Assembly: GCF_000143415.4 (NCBI RefSeq)
Contig: NW_003314267.1
Location: 1,185,309-1,249,308 of the forward strand
Reading direction: 5' to 3'
DNA: 64,000 bases
DNA from: Selaginella moellendorffii
Lineage: Eukaryota; Plantae; Lycopodiophyta
The notes beneath the pieces were generated by a model, which searched no databases, was not told where the DNA came from, and worked only from the letters and a program-made list of their open reading frames with translations. Positions 34,222-42,476 of the stretch are shown here, one piece after another. How positions within the stretch are numbered: the first letter of the stretch is position 1; each line of letters begins with the position of its first letter. The translations under genes were made by a program, and so were the position numbers.

Positions 34222-36941
34222 ATGTTTCTTCAGTGGAAGAGACTGTGGAAGGCGCTAGTGCGGAAGCTCAGGCGAAAGCTAGGGATAGATCGCGCTCGAG
34301 TGGCGGCAGCTTCTCTTGTGGCGGCAATGGATCTGAAGCAGCCGGCATTGCCGATCTCTTTCCCGCTCACTTCTTTGGATCAGCTCAGGGATGATTCCGT
34401 GTTCCAGAGCTTCCATTTCCCATTCCAGCAATGCTCGGTGCCGCTGGCGCTGCAGGGAGGGAAGAAGGAGAGGAAATCCAAGCTGTTGGTGTGCCACGAC
34501 ATGAAAGGAGGCTACCAGGATGATAGATTCGTGCAAGGCGATGGCAATTACAATGCTTACTCGCTCTGGCACTGGCAATGCATTGATGTTTTCGTGTATT
34601 TCTCGCACTCCTTGATCACTATTCCTCCTCCCTGTTGGATCAACGCTGGTCACAGGCATGGAGTCCAGGTAAGAAACTTCACCATTCTTTGGCATCCATT
34701 TTTCTGACGAGATTATATCGCAGGTCTTGGGAACTTTCATCACGGAGTGGGATCAAGGGGCTCAAACTTGCAAGTTGCTTCTGGAATCCAAGGATTCGGC
34801 AAGAATGTATGCGTCTCGGCTAGCAAAAGTTGCTCGGGAGTTTGGATTTGATGGATGGCTGGTGAGCAAACAAACTTTTCTTCCCCTTTGTCTTATAGAA
34901 ACGTTTTTGGTTGTTTCAGCTAAACATTGAAAACACTGTTCCGGTGGAGCAAATCGACACTCTCGTGGTGTTTGTATCGGAGCTCACCAAAGTCATGCAC
35001 GACCTTGTTCCGGGCTCGCTGGTGATATGGTTAGATTGATAGTTTTCTTGCTTTCTTTGGTACTCACTTTCCATGAACAAGGTATGATGCAGTTACTGTG
35101 GATGGAGAACTACAATGGCAAGACATGCTAACAGAGAAGAACAAGCGCTTCTTTGATGCTTGCGATGGGATTTTCATTAACTACACATGGAAGGTGTATA
35201 TCATACTTCTAAGCAAATCGTGAAATATCTCATTCTTATGCCTTGTTCCAGAGGGACTACGCAGCGAAATCGGCGAAAGTGGCTGGCGATCGAGCCTCCG
35301 ACGTTTACATGGGAGTGGACGTTTTCGGGAGAAACACTTTCGGAGGAGGAGGATTTCAGGTAAGCAACAATGTTTGCATTGCGTTTCAAGAGACCAACTC
35401 TGGTAACTTTTGCTTGTCTAGAGCAACGTTGCCTTGAAAGTAGCGCTGGAGGCCGGTGTTTCGGCAGCATTGTTTGGTCCCGGGTGGGTCTACGAGAAAA
35501 ATATTGGGCCAACTTTCGAAGACGCACAAATCAGGTACCTACGAGTTTAACTCGGTCTTTTCCTCTCTTTTTGTTTCTCATTCGGAACCTTCTTGTGGAA
35601 GGTTTTGGGCTTCTATACACAATGCCTGGCCCGTATCACACAGATATCCTGTCACGCTGCCTTTCTTCTCGGATTTCAGCCAGGTAAGTAGTAAAAATCA
35701 TTGCGAGCAAAGTTTTCATGACGTTTGTTTTGCCAGGGTTTCGGGAAAGCCGTCTATGTAGATGGTGACCAGGTATCAGACTCTCCCTGGAGTAATATTT
35801 CATGCCAAGCTCTTCAAGTATGGTTTCCTCTTCTATTGTTTTTGCTTGTGACAATAACAATCTTGGTTTTGGTAGCCGCTTTTGCTTGGAGCGCTAGATC
35901 CAGAGTTTGAAGTTACTGTAAGGTAAAAGTTTCGCTGAGAAAACGAAGTTATCCCAAAGATTGTTCACATTCTTATTTTCAGATCAGTGGATCGAGTTTA
36001 CAGCGGTGGATCGAGCCTCCGTTTCCTCGGAAAGCTCAAAGCTTCCGACGTTCGCATCACTAAGCTGTATGATCCACACCTGGTTCTCGCAAATCCTACT
36101 CTCTCCATTGACTTCTCGGTAGCGTTCTCAAGCCTCGCAAGCTCATCTTAACAGTGTTGCGCTGCAGGTCATGTCCAAGGAAAACGCAATCTTTTACCTC
36201 GTTCTTAAGTTGCAAGGCCCTGGAGGAATTCGCGTAGTGTTTCTCTCGAACGAGCACAGCGGCACCTCAGAGAAGAAGACGAATCAAAGCTCCTCCAGTT
36301 TCAGTGCCTTTGAGCCACACCGGACAGTGACGAAGAGCTCCGGTACCTCGGATGACGCCTGGAATGTGAGTGAGTACCAGATCGAGGTGGAACAAAGCTC
36401 CGTGGTAACCAATATCTACGGCATGAGCACCACCAGGAACGCTCCTCTGGACTTCGAAGAGATCACAGGCACTCTGGCGGCCGAAAGCTCCTCCGATACA
36501 CAGACCTCTTTTCGGCTTACCTCGTCTTCACTGACGCGGAAGTTCTTGCCGGACGCTACTCAACCATACGAGCTTCACTTGGGCCACCTGAGGATCACAG
36601 CAGAACCGCCAGCGCCACCGACAGTTTCGAGCTTCCGAGCCGACGATCTCAAGTGGTCCACAAGCCCCGATGGCAATAAGCTCGTCAGCCTCACGCTCAA
36701 GTGGGAGTTTGGAGGTGGTTTCCAGGCCGATCGCTGCAACACATACGTCGAGATGGTGGGAAAAGAGACGACGAGCAAAGCCAAGTACCTTGGAGCTGCT
36801 TTCGTCGACGCCTTCTACGTGGATTCGCTTCTAGTTCCTCACGAGACTTCCAGCTTGGTTTTCCGCCTCCAGCCTCGCAACGCTGCTGGTTTTCACCAGG
36901 GCTGGAATGAAGCTCTCACGCTCACTGTCGAAGTCCTTTGA
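34222..36941 (+). CDS. ENGase: Cytosolic endo-beta-N-acetylglucosaminidase (GH85), about 11 exons
   Basis: LLVCHDMKGGYQDD, IDVFVYFSH, HRHGVQVLGTFITEW, FGFDGWL-NIE, WYDAVT, DGIFINYTW, GVDVFGR, FGPGWVYE across short introns. Confidence 0.93.
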
Positions 36942-36959
36942 AAAAAAAAATAAAGTACT

Positions 36960-39795
36960 CTAGGCGAGTAGCGCCTGCTGGAGGATATCGTCTTCGACCG
37001 CCAGCCTCTCCAGCACCATTTTGGCTCGTCTCCTCGACACCTCCTTGATCTGCCAGTCGCCGAGCATGCCAACCAGCTCTCTCACGTTGCAACAATCCGG
37101 TCCCGCTACAACGACCCTTCCAAGCCTGCTCCTCGCAGCAATCTCTTGGAGCTTGTCCGCGGCCCAGACACTGTCCTCTTCCCGGCCCGCCATCGCCAGC
37201 ATCCTCATCAAAAGCTCCACGCAGTCGAGCGAAGATCCGTCGCCACCGTCGCTACTCTGTTCCTTCTTCGTCTTCTCGAGAATCTCCAGAGCTTTCGCAA
37301 AGTGAGCCACGGCCTTGTCTGGATCGCTGGCCTCCACGCCTCTTCCCGACTGGTAGCACCTCCCGAGCTCTACGTGAGCGCTCGCGCATCCTTCTCGAGC
37401 GGCCTGCTTGTAGAGCCCAAGCGCTCGCTTCTCGTCTCTGGCTATCCCGAGGCCGCTCTCCAGGCACATTGCGAGCTTCCACCTCGCTGATCCTCCTCCC
37501 GCGCAAGACGAGGCCTTGTAGTACCAGAAGACCGCCTGCTCAAACTCGTGGCCGGGACCGATCCAGTTCGCCATCAAGTCCCCTGCGATCTCTGCGGCCG
37601 CGCCGAATCCATCTTCGTGTTCTAGTTGCTCCACGGAGCTCGCCAGCCAGAGCACGAAGCTGTCCATTGGAAACGGCCAGAAACCCGGTCCTTTCTCCTT
37701 CTCAAGCATCGATATGAAGAGTCCTTCGCCAGCTTCTCGTTGTCGCTGCTGTTTCTCGTTGTGCATGAGAATGACGTCGACGAGGAACTTCACTCCAAGG
37801 TGGCTGGCGAGCTGGCTAAAGTCGGACATCGTAAGAGGAAGGATATCTTGGTGCTGCCATGACTGCCTTCTCGCGATGATCGCCTTAAGGCTCCTCAGCG
37901 CCAGGCAAACCTGTGTGAAGGACAGCCTCTGCTCTGGTTCGTGGCTCCAGCATCTACGAGCAAGCACCGCCAGGAACGCCGGAGAATGCCCAAGGATGTC
38001 GGGCCTGCCTCTCTCGACGCTCACCAGTTGAAAGAGCTGCGACTCGGTCGTGAGTTGATCGTAATCGGAGAATGGCCTGCGGCTCGAAAGTATCTGGAAG
38101 CAGAGCATACCGAAGCTGTAGACGTCGGACTTCTTCGTGAACGTAGCCTCGCCGGAGGAACTGGCTTCCTGCTGCTCAAAGACTTCCGGAGCTTGCCAGA
38201 ACGGTGGCACATCATGCCGCTGCTGCTGACTCTCGAAGGTTTCCTGGTCGTCGTCGTCAGAAGCTACGCTCTGCAACCACGAGGATCCTGCCAGCCTCGT
38301 CTTTGGCAATCCATAGTCGGTGATTTTCACTTGGATGAACTCGTCCAGCTCGTGTTTGCTGCTCGAAGATCTTCTCCGCCGCCTCGAGTCGGTCGTGCTG
38401 GGAACGAGTAACACGTTGAAAGCGTTGAGACACCGGTGGAGAACCCCTCTCCTGTGTAGAAAAGCCATTCCTTCCGCTACTTGGAGCATGATCTCGACGG
38501 CTACTGGGAGTGGAACAGGACCTTGGCCGAGATTTAAAACGCTGTCCAGATCTTTCCTCAGCAGCTCTGTCCATAACCGGCATTCTCCAAATTCCTCGTC
38601 GTCGTTTGTTATGCTCGCAAAGAGAAGCTGAGCCAGGCGAGGATGGCGGAGACTCGCGAGCACCGACACTTCGTTCCAGAAGGACTCTCGGCTGAGAAAA
38701 GCCGTTACTTTCAGCGCGGCAGGAAATCCAAGAAACTCGGACTTGTAAACGATGCCAAAGAAACCTGTACCGAGTAGCAAATTCTCCGTTCTTCTGCTGG
38801 TGATATTATCCAATGCCCAGGATTCTCTCTGGTGAATCCTCTCGATGTAGGACTCAAACCCGTCGTCTTCGGTATCCAGCTTGGCTATGAGATAGCTGGT
38901 AATCTCCGCCACCCGATTCTCCTTCCTGCTCTTCGAACTAAAAACAGCCAGGCCCCTGAAAAAGAAGCCGTCGTGCTTTTGCTTCATCTTCCGGAGCTTG
39001 TCTAGCAGATTTCTGCGGTCCAGCCGCATTGCCAGGATCAATCCACGGTCTGCTTCCGCATTGAGTGTTTCCTCTGCTATCTCGAAAGTTCTTTCTATCA
39101 TCCAGTATGGGATGTGGTGCTGATAGCTGCCGGTACCTAGCCTCTTTTTCTGGTGCTTGAAGGAATCGTCTCTCCCTGCTCTGAACTGCGCGAGGACAAC
39201 TTCCATCACTGACACACACCATTGCTGGTGCTGGTACTGCTGCGCAACGAAGATCCCATCGTCCGCCGCATAGACGATTGCTTTCATCAGCCACGAGTCC
39301 TCAGCGTCCTCCTGCCCGGACGACACCCAGTAGGACACTAGAACCTCAGCGTCGCGAGTGACTTTGGCTATTTCCACGGCCGCTGTTCTGCATTGCTCGC
39401 ATGAAGTCGAGTCCAAGCTCGCCATCTCGTCAACCAAGTTCCTCAGATTGTCATGGAAGCTCTTCAAGAAAGGACAAGAGAGGAAAAGTTAGCCAGGAGG
39501 CAAAACAGTATCAACTCAACAGTACCTGCAGGTCGAGGAATCTGCACTGTGCGTGATTGAACCTCAAACTCGCGGTGCTCGCGCCAACGATCGAAGAGCT
39601 CCCAGCGGTGCTGCTGTTACACAGCCTGATGAGCCTTTCCAGTACCTGAATTGCTTGCTCCACGATTCTGATAGAGCTACTCTCGCTGGACGTGGCAGAA
39701 TCATACAAGGAGGAGCCCGAATACGAAGAAGGCATGGCCTTGATCATCAGCTTCCGCCTTGCTATTTGCATCAGAACTTTGGCTGGCAGATCCAT
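36960..39795 (-). CDS. N-terminal helical (MLKL/HeLo-like) domain + TKL-type pseudokinase + SEL1 repeats; exons ~39795-39526, 39461-36960
   Basis: LGTGFFGIVY, AALK, HRCLNAFN (HRD lost), DYG, WQAPE, KSDVYSFG. C-terminal AVFWYYKA..KLAMCLESGLGIARDEKRALGLYKQAA..ELGRCYQSGRGV. The start codon is uncertain. Confidence 0.85.
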
Positions 39796-40212
39796 TCTCT
39801 CTCCGCAACTGAAAAGCTGGAGTGCAGAAAAAGCCACAGCTCACGCCTGAGCAGTCCGCAACAGCAACATTCCTCTTGGCTTTTCAGTGGTCCTGGCAGT
39901 GAGGCACCCGATTTTCCAAGCCCGTGTTGGAACGCTTTATACCTCCAGATTTGAATATTTGTGTTTGGTGAGCCGAGCGTCCTCGTCGCAGCCAGGTACG
40001 CTCATGCTTGCTTCAGATCCGGACTTGGCAGTAGCCTTGCGTGGAGTTCACATCGAGATGAATAGTGGAGTCCACCACCTCGACATTAACGCCGAGGCCT
40101 TCTGGGTGACAGGGACCTTATCTTGAGCCGAAAGAAGACCCTGTTCCCGTCCGCAAGAAGTTTCTAAACCCAACCGCGAGCTCACTTGGTAACGGACATC
40201 TCCCTCTCCGGA

Positions 40213-42015
40213 TCATGGTCGATGGAGCTTTGTAGAATTAGCGACGTACACACTCGAGAGTGCAACGTACGCAGCAGCCGAGTTTCGCGAGTTGAGTTGC
40301 ACCGCTTGTTTCGCGGCACGCTCCGCTCTCGAGACGTCGCCGTGCATCTTGCAAGCCCCCAGCAGAGACATCCATTTGAAGTCGTCCACCACCGACGCGG
40401 GCATTTTCTTGATGAACTCCTCGGCCTCGAGCAGCCACCCCGCCCGTCCCAGCAGGTCCGCAAGGCAGCCGTAGTGCTCCTTCTCGGGAACTATCCAGTG
40501 GTCCCTCATGAGGCCGAAGTAGTAGCAGCCTTGCTCGACACGGCCAGTATGGGTGCAACCGTCGAGCATTCCCATGAAAGTTCTACCGTCAGCTCCAATG
40601 CCTTCCAGCAGCATCATCTGAAAGAGCTCGAGAGTGCTGGCAGGGTCGCTGTGTACTGCGAAGGCTGCTATCAAAGTGTTCCAAGTCACGAGCATTGCCG
40701 ACGAATCCCAAGCCACGGAAGAAGAGATTGCGAGGAAGATCTCCCAGGCCTGTTTCAGCTTCCCAGACTTCCCATACATGCTCAGCAACGCATTCGCCAC
40801 CAAGGTGTCTGAGATAGCTCCCAAAACCACCACCCGCTTGTGAAGAGCTCGACCAACTTCCAGGAACGATGAGTCGGCAGCACAAGCGTTGAGAAGAGCC
40901 ACAAGAGTGACTTTCCTCACGGGATTTCCTTCATGCTCCATCTTCCTGAAGAGCATCACGCTGGAAGCCGAGTCACCATTGTCTGCACAGGCACCGATCA
41001 TCGCTGTCCAGCAAGCGGAGTCCCTGTTCTGGATTCCAGCAAAGACTTCTCGAGCGCCATCCAAGTTCCCACATTTTCCATACATGCTGACGATGGTGGT
41101 GGCGACTGCGGTGTCGTGGCTCAATCCCTTTTCGGTCGACTGGGAGTGGATCGACCTGCCGTGAACGAGAAACTGGGGAGATTGACAGGCCTGGAAGACA
41201 CCCAGGAACGTAACTTTGCTCGGCCTGTGCTGTCCATCGAGGAGCATTCTCCAGTAAACTCCAAGTGCCTCTTTGTGATGCCCATTTTGGGCATATGCTG
41301 CGATCATAGTGTTCCAAGTGACAGTGTTCTTCTCGGGCATGACCAGGAAGACGCTTGAGGCGCTACTCAAGGAACCGACCCTTCCATACATCGCCACTAG
41401 CGCGGTGCCCACTACGACGTCGATTTCCTCCAGCTCGATCCCTGTTCTTGATCTTGAGTCGTCGTAGAGGGAGTGGATCCATATCCCAAGGCGGAGATCG
41501 TTGCAGTTGGACAGAGCAGCCAGGAATGTCACGGCATTCGGCGCTACTCCCTGGAGCTGCATCGATCGAAAGAGATGGATCGCTCCTTCGCTACTGCCGG
41601 GCGATATTTCCCTGGATTCCGAGCGCGCGGAGATGAGAGCGGTCCAGGCAACCACGCCGGGCGCCGCGATTGCATCGAACACAACGCGCGCGCTGCGAAT
41701 ATCACCGCATTTGCCATACATGTTAAGGATCGCCGTCGCGAGCTGTGAATCGCGGCAATACCCGGATTCCTGCGCACACCTGTGGATTACCCGGCCCTGC
41801 TCCAAATCCCGGGCTGCCGCGGCCGCATTCCCGAGCGCCACGAACATCCGGCGGTCGGGAGCGATCCCTTCGAGCTGCATCTGGCGGAAGAGCGCCATCG
41901 CCTCCCTCGATCGGCCACGATCCACAAGCATTCCAAGAATCCGCGTCCATGTCGCCGACGGAGGAGGAGAAGCGAGCGACGTAGAACAAGAAAAATCCCC
42001 GCTAGGGTTTTGCAT
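40213..42015 (-). CDS. PLS-class PPR protein with E domain, no DYW (organellar RNA-editing factor type)
   Basis: Repeated TAILNMYGKCG / VTWNTMIAAYAQNG motifs; HYGCLADLLGRAG..WMSLLGACKMHGD..AAYVALSSVY; intronless. Confidence 0.93.
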   Translation of the reverse strand: MQNPSGDFSCSTSLASPPPSATWTRILGMLVDRGRSREAMALFRQMQLEGIAPDRRMFVALGNAAAAARDLEQGRVIHRCAQESGYCRDSQLATAILNMYGKCGDIRSARVVFDAIAAPGVVAWTALISARSESREISPGSSEGAIHLFRSMQLQGVAPNAVTFLAALSNCNDLRLGIWIHSLYDDSRSRTGIELEEIDVVVGTALVAMYGRVGSLSSASSVFLVMPEKNTVTWNTMIAAYAQNGHHKEALGVYWRMLLDGQHRPSKVTFLGVFQACQSPQFLVHGRSIHSQSTEKGLSHDTAVATTIVSMYGKCGNLDGAREVFAGIQNRDSACWTAMIGACADNGDSASSVMLFRKMEHEGNPVRKVTLVALLNACAADSSFLEVGRALHKRVVVLGAISDTLVANALLSMYGKSGKLKQAWEIFLAISSSVAWDSSAMLVTWNTLIAAFAVHSDPASTLELFQMMLLEGIGADGRTFMGMLDGCTHTGRVEQGCYYFGLMRDHWIVPEKEHYGCLADLLGRAGWLLEAEEFIKKMPASVVDDFKWMSLLGACKMHGDVSRAERAAKQAVQLNSRNSAAAYVALSSVYVANSTKLHRP

Positions 42016-42476
42016 GGGAGAGAGACGAGCGAATCTTAGAGAATATCCTCTGAAGAAACTGGCGTCACGTGTCGCTCTCAATGCCGTTGGATTGGATGAG
42101 GAATATTCCACCACAATTCCACGCGGATGGTCTTAATGCCGGCGACCCTGTGCCATACAGAGTGAAGAGAGAGAGAGAAGGGAGAGGAGAGGGCATTAGG
42201 GCTTTTGGGCACAGATTTCTAGAGAAGGCGAGGGCGGCAGCGCTGGAAGGGAGCTAGAGATCGGCCGCTTGCCGACGCTCTTGCGAGCAACAGAATGCCT
42301 GGCGATTCGGTTTGTGAAAATCTCTCCTCTCCTCTCCCAGATTTTAGGTCCATTTCGCTGGCGGCCACTTGAAGTGTGATTTGATTCGTGCGTGTGCTTG
42401 CGTTGCTGCTGTGTGCTGAATTTCTGTGGTTTCTAATTCCTTTCCTCTTCGACTTTTTTGGCGGCAGCCCGTTTGT

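Follow-up and report, generated by a model that had tools for sequence, protein, structure and literature searches.

The gene considered here, LOC112344899 of the lycophyte Selaginella moellendorffii, lies within a stretch of 64,000 nucleotides (nt) of contig NW_003314267.1, which is the whole of the DNA analysed and is called the window below, with positions counted from its first letter. Its product is, with high probability, a divergent representative, from a lycophyte, of the MLKL-type family of land plants, and carries a Sel1 tail. What defines this family is a TKL-type kinase domain preceded by a HeLo-like helical bundle and brace (DUF1221-like) at the N-terminus. The gene and all parts of it given below are on the minus strand. 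A long minus-strand open reading frame (ORF; 36960-39467) and a second ORF with its ATG at 39795 upstream are both present, which bears out the long intact ORF described in the first-pass annotation of this DNA. Read from the sequence, a donor (CAG/GTACTG) after 39526 and an acceptor (TTGAAG/AGC) before 39461 join exon 1 (39526-39795, ATG 39795-39793, amino acids (aa) 1-90) to exon 2 (36960-39461, aa 91-923 and the stop codon at 36960-36962) across a GT..AG, phase 0 intron of 64 nt (39462-39525), so that the product has 90 + 833 = 923 aa. This is the NCBI protein XP_024526212.1, "uncharacterized protein LOC112344899" (923 aa; P0001 in what follows), in which exon 2 was found by a word-index search at 100% identity and 100% coverage, and whose aa 1-90 match exon 1, also at 100% identity. 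Protein searches and folds used this database record, which equals the spliced product, and the exons were joined in silico solely for the classification of codon changes.

Contigs from four runs of four studies were compared with positions 36500-40300 of the window; transcript ends and expression levels lie beyond what such contigs record. The spliced form is present in long contigs of three of the four runs (X1, X9 and X10), from three independent studies, and since these precisely skip 39462-39525, with CT..AC ends on the plus strand (GT..AG on the gene strand), they are transcript assemblies. LOC112344899 is present in RNA-type contigs of many runs in several studies, as if it were broadly expressed. 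A contig of the remaining run (X2) retains the first intron, where read-through would stop the frame after four extra codons; it could come from an unspliced precursor, from DNA in the library or from regulated intron retention.

Another scaffold holds a 99% identical second copy, P0173 (LOC112350997), with an intact frame of 923 codons; flanked there too by the PPR gene and the GH85/ENGase gene, this copy represents the other haplotype. The coding differences between the two comprise 23 synonymous and 11 non-synonymous changes, giving a ratio of non-synonymous to synonymous polymorphism (pN/pS) of 0.14 on small polymorphism counts, with a binomial p against the neutral expectation of 2e-8, and an independent count of the variants in the RNA contigs gave 22 synonymous against 10 non-synonymous. 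Divided by part, pN/pS is 0.18 for the N-domain, 0.15 for the kinase and 0.04 for the C-terminal third, which is thus the most constrained part of the protein. Of the 11 amino-acid differences, the helical head and brace (aa 126-317) account for eight, the kinase for two and the C-terminal third for one; the head, despite carrying with the brace most of these differences, still has a pN/pS of just 0.18. The sole indel is a 10-nt deletion inside the intron of the other haplotype.

LOC112344899 is therefore a native, expressed gene under selective constraint, and what was found is the reverse of an unexpressed gene with dN/dS near 1, which the first-pass annotation had named as the finding that would count against its proposal. 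That we are looking at a young, lineage-specific fusion which is drifting to loss and has no maintained function would suit the lack, in the databases searched, of any orthologue for either the N-domain or the full architecture, the catalytically degenerate kinase and long branches described below, and the frame-ending intron kept in run X2. It is nevertheless a very remote reading, and one which constraint and expression bring close to refuted: both haplotypes have intact 923-codon frames, with the Sel1 third the least changed, the only indel is intronic, and three studies have the spliced form. Contamination or a fungal origin was considered as well and rejected, because land-plant genes (a PPR gene with an E motif and the GH85 ENGase gene) flank the gene on two haplotype scaffolds; the RNA-confirmed splicing of the intron and the plant relatives of the kinase also speak against it.

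The middle of the protein (aa 312-620, 37872-38798) is a pseudokinase domain, recognised from Pfam, PDB matches, motifs and trees. The Pfam family PK_Tyr_Ser-Thr (PF07714) matches aa 319-609 at 1.5e-30 over profile positions 7-255 of 258, which is a complete, TKL-like kinase fold. Its motifs were judged by aligning it to plant MLKLs and to ordinary kinases. The catalytic loop reads HRCLNAFN (aa 432-439, 38415-38438), with the catalytic Asp replaced by Cys and the Lys by Asn, and is identical in the second haplotype copy, so that the residues for phosphoryl transfer are missing from both; DYG stands in place of DFG (aa 472-474, 38310-38318), with the Mg-binding Asp kept. All three substitutions had been read correctly in the first-pass annotation. 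The set of residues lost is different from that lost in the seed-plant MLKLs. P0001 has an intact G-loop (GTGFFG, aa 321-326) and an intact beta3 Lys (K341, in AALKV), whereas in the seed-plant proteins the G-loop is lost and the Lys is an Arg; their catalytic loop is HGDLNPxN, against HRCLNAFN with the final Asn439 retained, and their DFG site is GFG or GYG, against DYG with Asp472 retained. The alphaC Glu is retained in both. With its catalytic base gone but the residues for binding nucleotide and metal retained, the domain is most likely, as predicted from its residues, a nucleotide-binding, non-catalytic switch or scaffold and not an enzyme. Its activation segment (aa 475-513) is long, acidic and Ser/Thr-rich.

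The same retained residues (G-loop, Lys341, alphaC Glu, Asn439 and Asp472), all present here unlike in the seed-plant MLKLs, are also what an atypical, weakly active kinase would need, in which Cys434 or another residue replaces the catalytic Asp and which signals through phosphorylation as do its active Sphagnum relatives and the cereal kinase Pm13. Most of these Sphagnum relatives have complete catalytic motifs, and HER3, CASK and WNK are once-called pseudokinases that retain weak activity. With both the catalytic Asp and the catalytic-loop Lys replaced, in both haplotype copies, we regard residual activity of this kind as improbable, and prefer a non-catalytic domain.

The affinity of this domain is with plant MLKLs. 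Its best PDB sequence matches are AtMLKL3 (6KA4, 2.7e-30) and AtMLKL2 (6LBA, 2.6e-28), with Src-family kinases, B-Raf, RIPK1 and TAK1 ranking below them, and its identity with plant MLKL kinase domains runs from 35 to 40%, versus 26-31% with other kinases. P0001 and the plant MLKLs have in common an insertion between the catalytic loop and DFG, another between APEV..E and DVYSFGMLCF, and LN in the catalytic loop, where the Asn for Lys could be convergent. Two quick IQ-TREE trees of the kinase domain were built with support from the Shimodaira-Hasegawa-like approximate likelihood ratio test (SH-aLRT) and without bootstraps, the first on 73 rows and the second on 78 (19 receptor-kinase or long-branch rows dropped, 24 Sphagnum rows added). 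P0001 falls into a clade with a family from the peat moss Sphagnum, with the tandem kinase P0003 of the moss Ceratodon and with the seed-plant MLKLs (SH-aLRT 91-92). The latter make up a clade of their own (support 100), which is nested among Sphagnum groups at a support of 96, and P0001 is outside this seed-plant clade; the tree rows nearest to P0001 are PP2C-fused Sphagnum kinases, at 38% identity. The pseudokinase of the first-pass annotation thus stands, and gains a plant-MLKL affinity through its best matches 6KA4 and 6LBA, the insertion after APE and a clade with an SH-aLRT of 92. Because most moss members are active, as far as their motifs tell, and P0001 has lost other residues than the seed-plant MLKLs have, the dead-kinase state of P0001 looks like a separate loss, which suggests that dead kinases arose more than once in the family.

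The C-terminal third begins with a linker (aa 621-707, 37611-37871), possibly the first turns of a solenoid, continues with three Sel1 repeats (aa 708-818, 37278-37610), the first of them degenerate, and closes with a helical tail (aa 819-923, 36963-37277). The Pfam family Sel1 (PF08238) matches at 1.5e-15 and 57.4 bits against a cut-off of 30.7, with two stretches individually significant, and the third, degenerate repeat is visible in alignments with Sel1 proteins of the PDB, which match aa 708-816 (6OK3 at 4.7e-25, human SEL1L at 6e-13). The Pfam scan gave no family for the linker or for the tail. In an ESM Atlas model of the protein (whole-protein predicted local distance difference test (pLDDT) of 0.58), aa 635-923 align to bacterial Sel1 solenoids with a template modelling score of about 0.55, and we follow as a lead, from this model, that the entire C-terminal third may be one Sel1-type solenoid. 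Where the protein had been described as ending in 2-3 Sel1 repeats, the repeats themselves are upheld, and are three in number, while about 105 residues follow them. The Ser-rich C-terminal extension of the plant MLKLs was not found; P0001 has the Sel1-type solenoid in that place. Kinase-SEL1 fusions had also been remarked on as typical of glomeromycete fungi rather than plants; for the kinase of P0001 such an affinity is unsupported, since the relatives found are land-plant proteins.

The N-terminal 311 residues consist of three parts. An extension (aa 1-40, 39676-39795), which the seed-plant MLKLs and the Sphagnum family do not have (alignments A3 and A6), consists of a basic amphipathic helix and a Ser-rich linker; a low-confidence AlphaFold2 model has a helix at aa 5-20. 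This helix, MDLPAKVLMQIARRKLMIKAM, with the Ser-rich stretch next to it, might serve to target the protein or to anchor it in a membrane. The HeLo-like bundle region (aa 41-190, 39162-39675, spanning the intron) was assigned by hhalign through the Sphagnum profile A6, and contains the motifs FNHAQC (aa 79-84), EIAKVTRDAEVLV, SWLMKAI (aa 146-152) and QQWC (aa 169-172); the strings that had been quoted earlier as an MLKL-like pattern are found at aa 52-59, 79-87, 118-132 and 146-152. A brace-like region (aa 191-311, 38799-39161) is all-helical in both AlphaFold2 models, and was aligned to the N-region of a 548-aa protein from metagenome contigs, P0006, at a BLASTP E of 7e-4. Searches of PDB sequences with the N-terminus and with a 3-row profile (A4) gave no match, a word-index search limited to aa 1-320 returned P0001 alone, and the ESM Atlas look-alike search with the N-terminus gave no usable match.

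It is the protein P0006 that opened a way around this, for its match to the P0001 kinase extends well upstream of the kinase, with the E of 7e-4 above for the N-region alone. The P0001-P0006 alignment (A5) was used to scan metagenome contigs of the Joint Genome Institute, and gave 80 loci (L005-L084) with intronless ORFs of about 460-590 aa, in which a helical N-region of 170-260 aa (NxxQC motif) precedes a kinase. Annotated proteins from Sphagnum magellanicum, S. jensenii and S. tenellum share 90%-identity clusters with these ORFs, so the loci are peat-moss host DNA. HRDLKxxN and DFG are complete in most of the members, which hence look active. An alignment of 22 Sphagnum N-regions (A6) displays the motifs NxxQCxxL, E..E..V..C, W..AA/KAI and F/W-C, common to P0001 and to DUF1221 (PF06760), which is the N-domain of the seed-plant MLKLs (10.1101/681015).

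Results of the profile comparisons connect both ends of this bridge. On the MLKL side, hhalign places A6 with the DUF1221 profile A1 at a probability of 97% (E 1.2e-10, 182 columns), its top match among all PDB sequences is AtMLKL2 (6LBA) at aa 22-228 (E 1.3e-11) with AtMLKL3 in register (E 0.41), and two Sphagnum members have sub-threshold, in-register Pfam matches to DUF1221. On the Selaginella side, A6 matches aa 36-312 of P0001 at a probability of 90.5% (E 1.4e-6) over 94 columns spanning aa 75-180, while the control region aa 620-923 gave a P of 0.26. By transitive homology through A6, the N-terminus of P0001 belongs to the plant-MLKL HeLo/brace superfamily, so that the sequence profiles support its homology to the plant-MLKL HeLo/brace domain (DUF1221), a domain whose fold is known from cryo-EM (10.1101/681015).

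Some members of the Sphagnum family carry further domains. Loci L009, L010, L013, L014 and L016 are single intronless ORFs of 770-790 aa in which a DUF1221-like helical N-domain is joined to a kinase that looks active and to a complete PP2C phosphatase domain (1e-54), and a literature search found no paper on a layout of MLKL-type head, kinase and PP2C. P0204 (Sphagnum magellanicum KAH9533006.1, 705 aa), from the 90%-identity cluster of L034, ends in a jacalin-like lectin domain (2.1e-27), and so adds a second case of an MLKL-type head and kinase joined to what may be a sensing module. Four longer proteins (P0214, P0215, P0219 and P0220; 805-1279 aa) are in the same 90%-identity cluster as the 505-aa kinase of L030; Pfam gave no family in any of the four, and they may be mis-called or overlapping gene models.

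Taken as a whole, the explanation we favour, and consider probably right, is that P0001 is an MLKL-type protein with a Sel1 tail which works as a switch. By analogy with AtMLKL2, AtMLKL3 and animal MLKL, the pseudokinase and brace would hold the helical bundle in an auto-inhibited state. The C-terminal Sel1-type alpha-solenoid would be a protein-binding module that replaces the Ser-rich tail of the seed-plant MLKLs, and the release signal could be a partner bound by this solenoid or acting through it; alternatively or additionally, another kinase could phosphorylate the Ser/Thr-rich activation segment. The freed bundle would then oligomerise and associate with a membrane or the cytoskeleton in a defence or cell-death response. 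The scheme of a Sel1 sensor, pseudokinase switch and bundle executor in one protein, as put forward in the first-pass annotation, is in this respect a fair and plausible hypothesis by analogy, and gains weight from the interchangeable tails of the family. As to the outcome, AtMLKLs restrict biotrophic pathogens and their HeLo domains bring about cell death (10.1101/681015), and Pm13, a kinase with a four-helix bundle, confers mildew resistance (PMC10951266). An immune or cell-death role for P0001 itself, which would follow from these analogies, is a tentative suggestion, to which we give somewhat less than even weight.

Several results weigh against this explanation. In Pfam, the N-terminal 330 aa gave no relevant match at E<=10, including to DUF1221, while the same search detected DUF1221 at 1e-100 in the proteins P0002 and P0004. 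An exhaustive phmmer search with aa 1-320 against 1.84 billion representative proteins returned only two repeat-protein artefacts (P0174 and P0175), and with no relative of these 320 residues among so many representatives, no orthologue is known outside S. moellendorffii. Direct profile comparisons were weak: the 19-row DUF1221 profile A1 against the N-terminus gave an hhalign P of 0.024 with 183 collinear columns, and with the 3-row profile A4 the P was 0.0066, so that aa 191-311 are collinear with the brace part of DUF1221 only at a P of 0.0066-0.024; in an hmmsearch shuffle test the real score was reached by 35 of 3000 shuffles, versus 583 of 3000 for a control region. The case for the N-terminus is a transitive one through a bridge family drawn from a single moss genus, and the significant stretch (aa 75-180) corresponds to helices 2-4 of the bundle, with the brace matched weakly. 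AlphaFold2 models of the N-terminus were of low confidence, the pLDDT being 37.7 for the sequence alone and 51.4 when it was supplied with an 18-row alignment; as the latter included MLKLs and biased the second model to their fold, it was weighted only as all-helical and bundle-like. The low-confidence model is a generic up-down four-helix bundle, Foldseek against the PDB gave no match, and fold searches gave generic helical bundles and no MLKL. Thus, of the MLKL/HeLo pattern claimed for this N-terminus, the homology holds through A6, while the four-helix fold is without a confident model (pLDDT 38 and 51). In the trees, P0001 has a long branch (1.2-1.36) near the base of the larger clade, and its placement within that clade is unsettled. 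No partner kinase, NLR or other immune-type gene adjoins the gene in the 64,000-nt window, and in AtMLKLs immunity is separable from cell death (10.1101/681015).

Next to the switch, one has to weigh a pseudokinase that serves ordinary signalling or the cytoskeleton as a scaffold or adaptor, with the head and the solenoid as protein-binding surfaces and no part in cell death. Sel1 repeats serve generally as adaptor modules, as they do in SEL1L, which acts in endoplasmic reticulum-associated degradation; the neighbouring genes (P450, ENGase, PPR, NUP50 and NKAP) are of housekeeping type, and the RNA-type contigs of many runs and several studies look like broad expression. The N-domain is, on the other hand, homologous to a domain that causes cell death when freed in AtMLKLs, and the swapping of C-terminal modules (PP2C, jacalin, Sel1) resembles immune proteins with an "integrated domain" more than it does scaffolds. 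We consider a plain scaffold somewhat unlikely. A much wider proposal would go beyond the switch: non-seed land plants would hold a large and so far undescribed family of one-chain MLKL-type receptors, in which a HeLo head that kills or acts on membranes is gated by a kinase or pseudokinase and the sensing tails are interchangeable, a Sel1 solenoid in Selaginella as against PP2C and jacalin lectin in Sphagnum. The kinase of P0001 would here be reduced to a pure switch, with its Sel1 solenoid directly sensing a pathogen or danger ligand. We hold it to be unlikely; if true, P0001 would be a sensor plus executor independent of NLRs, of a design older than the seed-plant MLKLs.

The neighbours in the window are P450 fragments, a convergent GH85/ENGase-like gene, a PLS-type PPR gene upstream, NUP50/RanBP1 and NKAP. 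The stop codons of LOC112344899 and of the ENGase-like gene are 19 nt apart. A 55-nt intron of minus-strand type (36734-36788, CT..AC on the plus strand), with its joint 36733/36789 in contigs of X1, X9 and X10 next to unspliced contigs, falls within the last coding exon of the convergent ENGase-like gene (36171-36941, plus strand; Ig_ENGASE1_C at 9.8e-17), and the long X1 contig of LOC112344899 ends exactly at 36789. From its strand type and adjacency we infer that it is an intron in the 3' untranslated region (UTR) of LOC112344899, antisense to the last exon of the ENGase-like gene. The exon junction, about 170 nt past the stop codon, might mark the mRNA for nonsense-mediated decay. On the other side, contigs with the spliced 5' part run upstream (39796-40300) unbroken into the PPR gene (40213-42114, minus strand; an ORF of 633 aa with a trace of an E motif), and one X10 contig is long enough for most of that gene; overlapping UTRs and read-through transcription would both fit these contigs.

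Among known systems, the nearest are the seed-plant MLKLs (AtMLKL1-3; 6KA4, 6LBA; Mahdi et al., 10.1101/681015), which have been reported across seed plants (10.1101/681015). They have the same order of bundle, brace and kinase-like domain, are like P0001 predicted to be catalytically dead, and their kinase domains and that of P0001 are mutual best solved relatives, with the insertion after APE and the catalytic-loop Asn for Lys in common. They differ in that Pfam DUF1221 matches them directly and P0001 not; in that they keep HGD and have lost the G-loop, the Lys (to Arg) and the DFG Asp (GFG/GYG), whereas P0001 has HRC together with an intact G-loop, beta3 Lys and DFG Asp; and in their Ser-rich tail, as opposed to the Sel1 solenoid and 40-aa N-terminal extension of the lycophyte protein. 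The Sphagnum family has the N-domain motifs of P0001 (NxxQC, E..E..V..C/W, W..AA/KAI and WC), falls in the same kinase clade with up to 38% identity, and varies in its C-terminal modules (PP2C, jacalin); it is intronless and has mostly HRDLKxxN and DFG, and no Sel1 repeats were seen among its members.

Animal MLKL (4BTF), which executes necroptosis, is an analogue, with a four-helix bundle, a brace and the switch logic of a nucleotide-binding pseudokinase that P0001 may share. In Pfam and PDB searches, the N-domain of P0001 had no sequence match to MLKL_NTD or to any MLKL chain of the PDB, and the 60 best-scoring PDB matches listed for its kinase include no animal MLKL. Animal MLKL has no Sel1 tail, and for P0001 no partner of the RIPK3 type is known. 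The cereal kinases with MLKL_NTD or MCAfunc heads are, like P0001, plant proteins with a four-helix-bundle head fused to a kinase, and their link to disease resistance and cell death is experimental (PMC10951266; 10.64898/2026.08.07.743466, the latter on a wheat helper MLKL). They have other N-domain families (MLKL_NTD, Cbl-N or MCAfunc), none of which Pfam matches in the N-terminus of P0001, and active kinases, and they cluster apart from the DUF1221 kinases; the two are treated as separate clusters in cereals (PMC10951266; 10.64898/2026.08.07.743466). A kinase-Sel1 protein from a Logan assembly (P0007) has a kinase and then Sel1 repeats, as has P0001, whereas its kinase is active by its motifs, it has no helical head, and it is 22% identical to P0001 and distant in the tree. 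Kinase-Sel1 genes are expanded in Rhizophagus, and no affinity of P0001 to glomeromycete kinases was seen.

NLRtracker counts "MLKL" among NLR-associated proteins from algae to angiosperms, without a description (PMC11218826), and our literature searches, which covered MLKLs of lycophytes (Selaginella included) and bryophytes as well as DUF1221/TKL-Gdt, turned up neither a Selaginella MLKL nor one with Sel1 repeats, and no account of the Sphagnum family. Measured against these systems, what is new here is the extension of a known plant family of immune and cell-death proteins, the MLKL type, to non-seed plants with a new Sel1 tail. The design of an MLKL-type head plus kinase reaches back to lycophytes and mosses, forms with a seemingly active kinase are common in the mosses, and the C-terminus of the family is a slot for different modules. 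Four-helix-bundle kinases of cereals are now coming to light as resistance genes and as helpers in cell death (PMC10951266; 10.64898/2026.08.07.743466). The Selaginella locus and the Sphagnum family give constructs with which to ask how such proteins switch on, and whether, in early-diverging plants, the head is able to kill cells.

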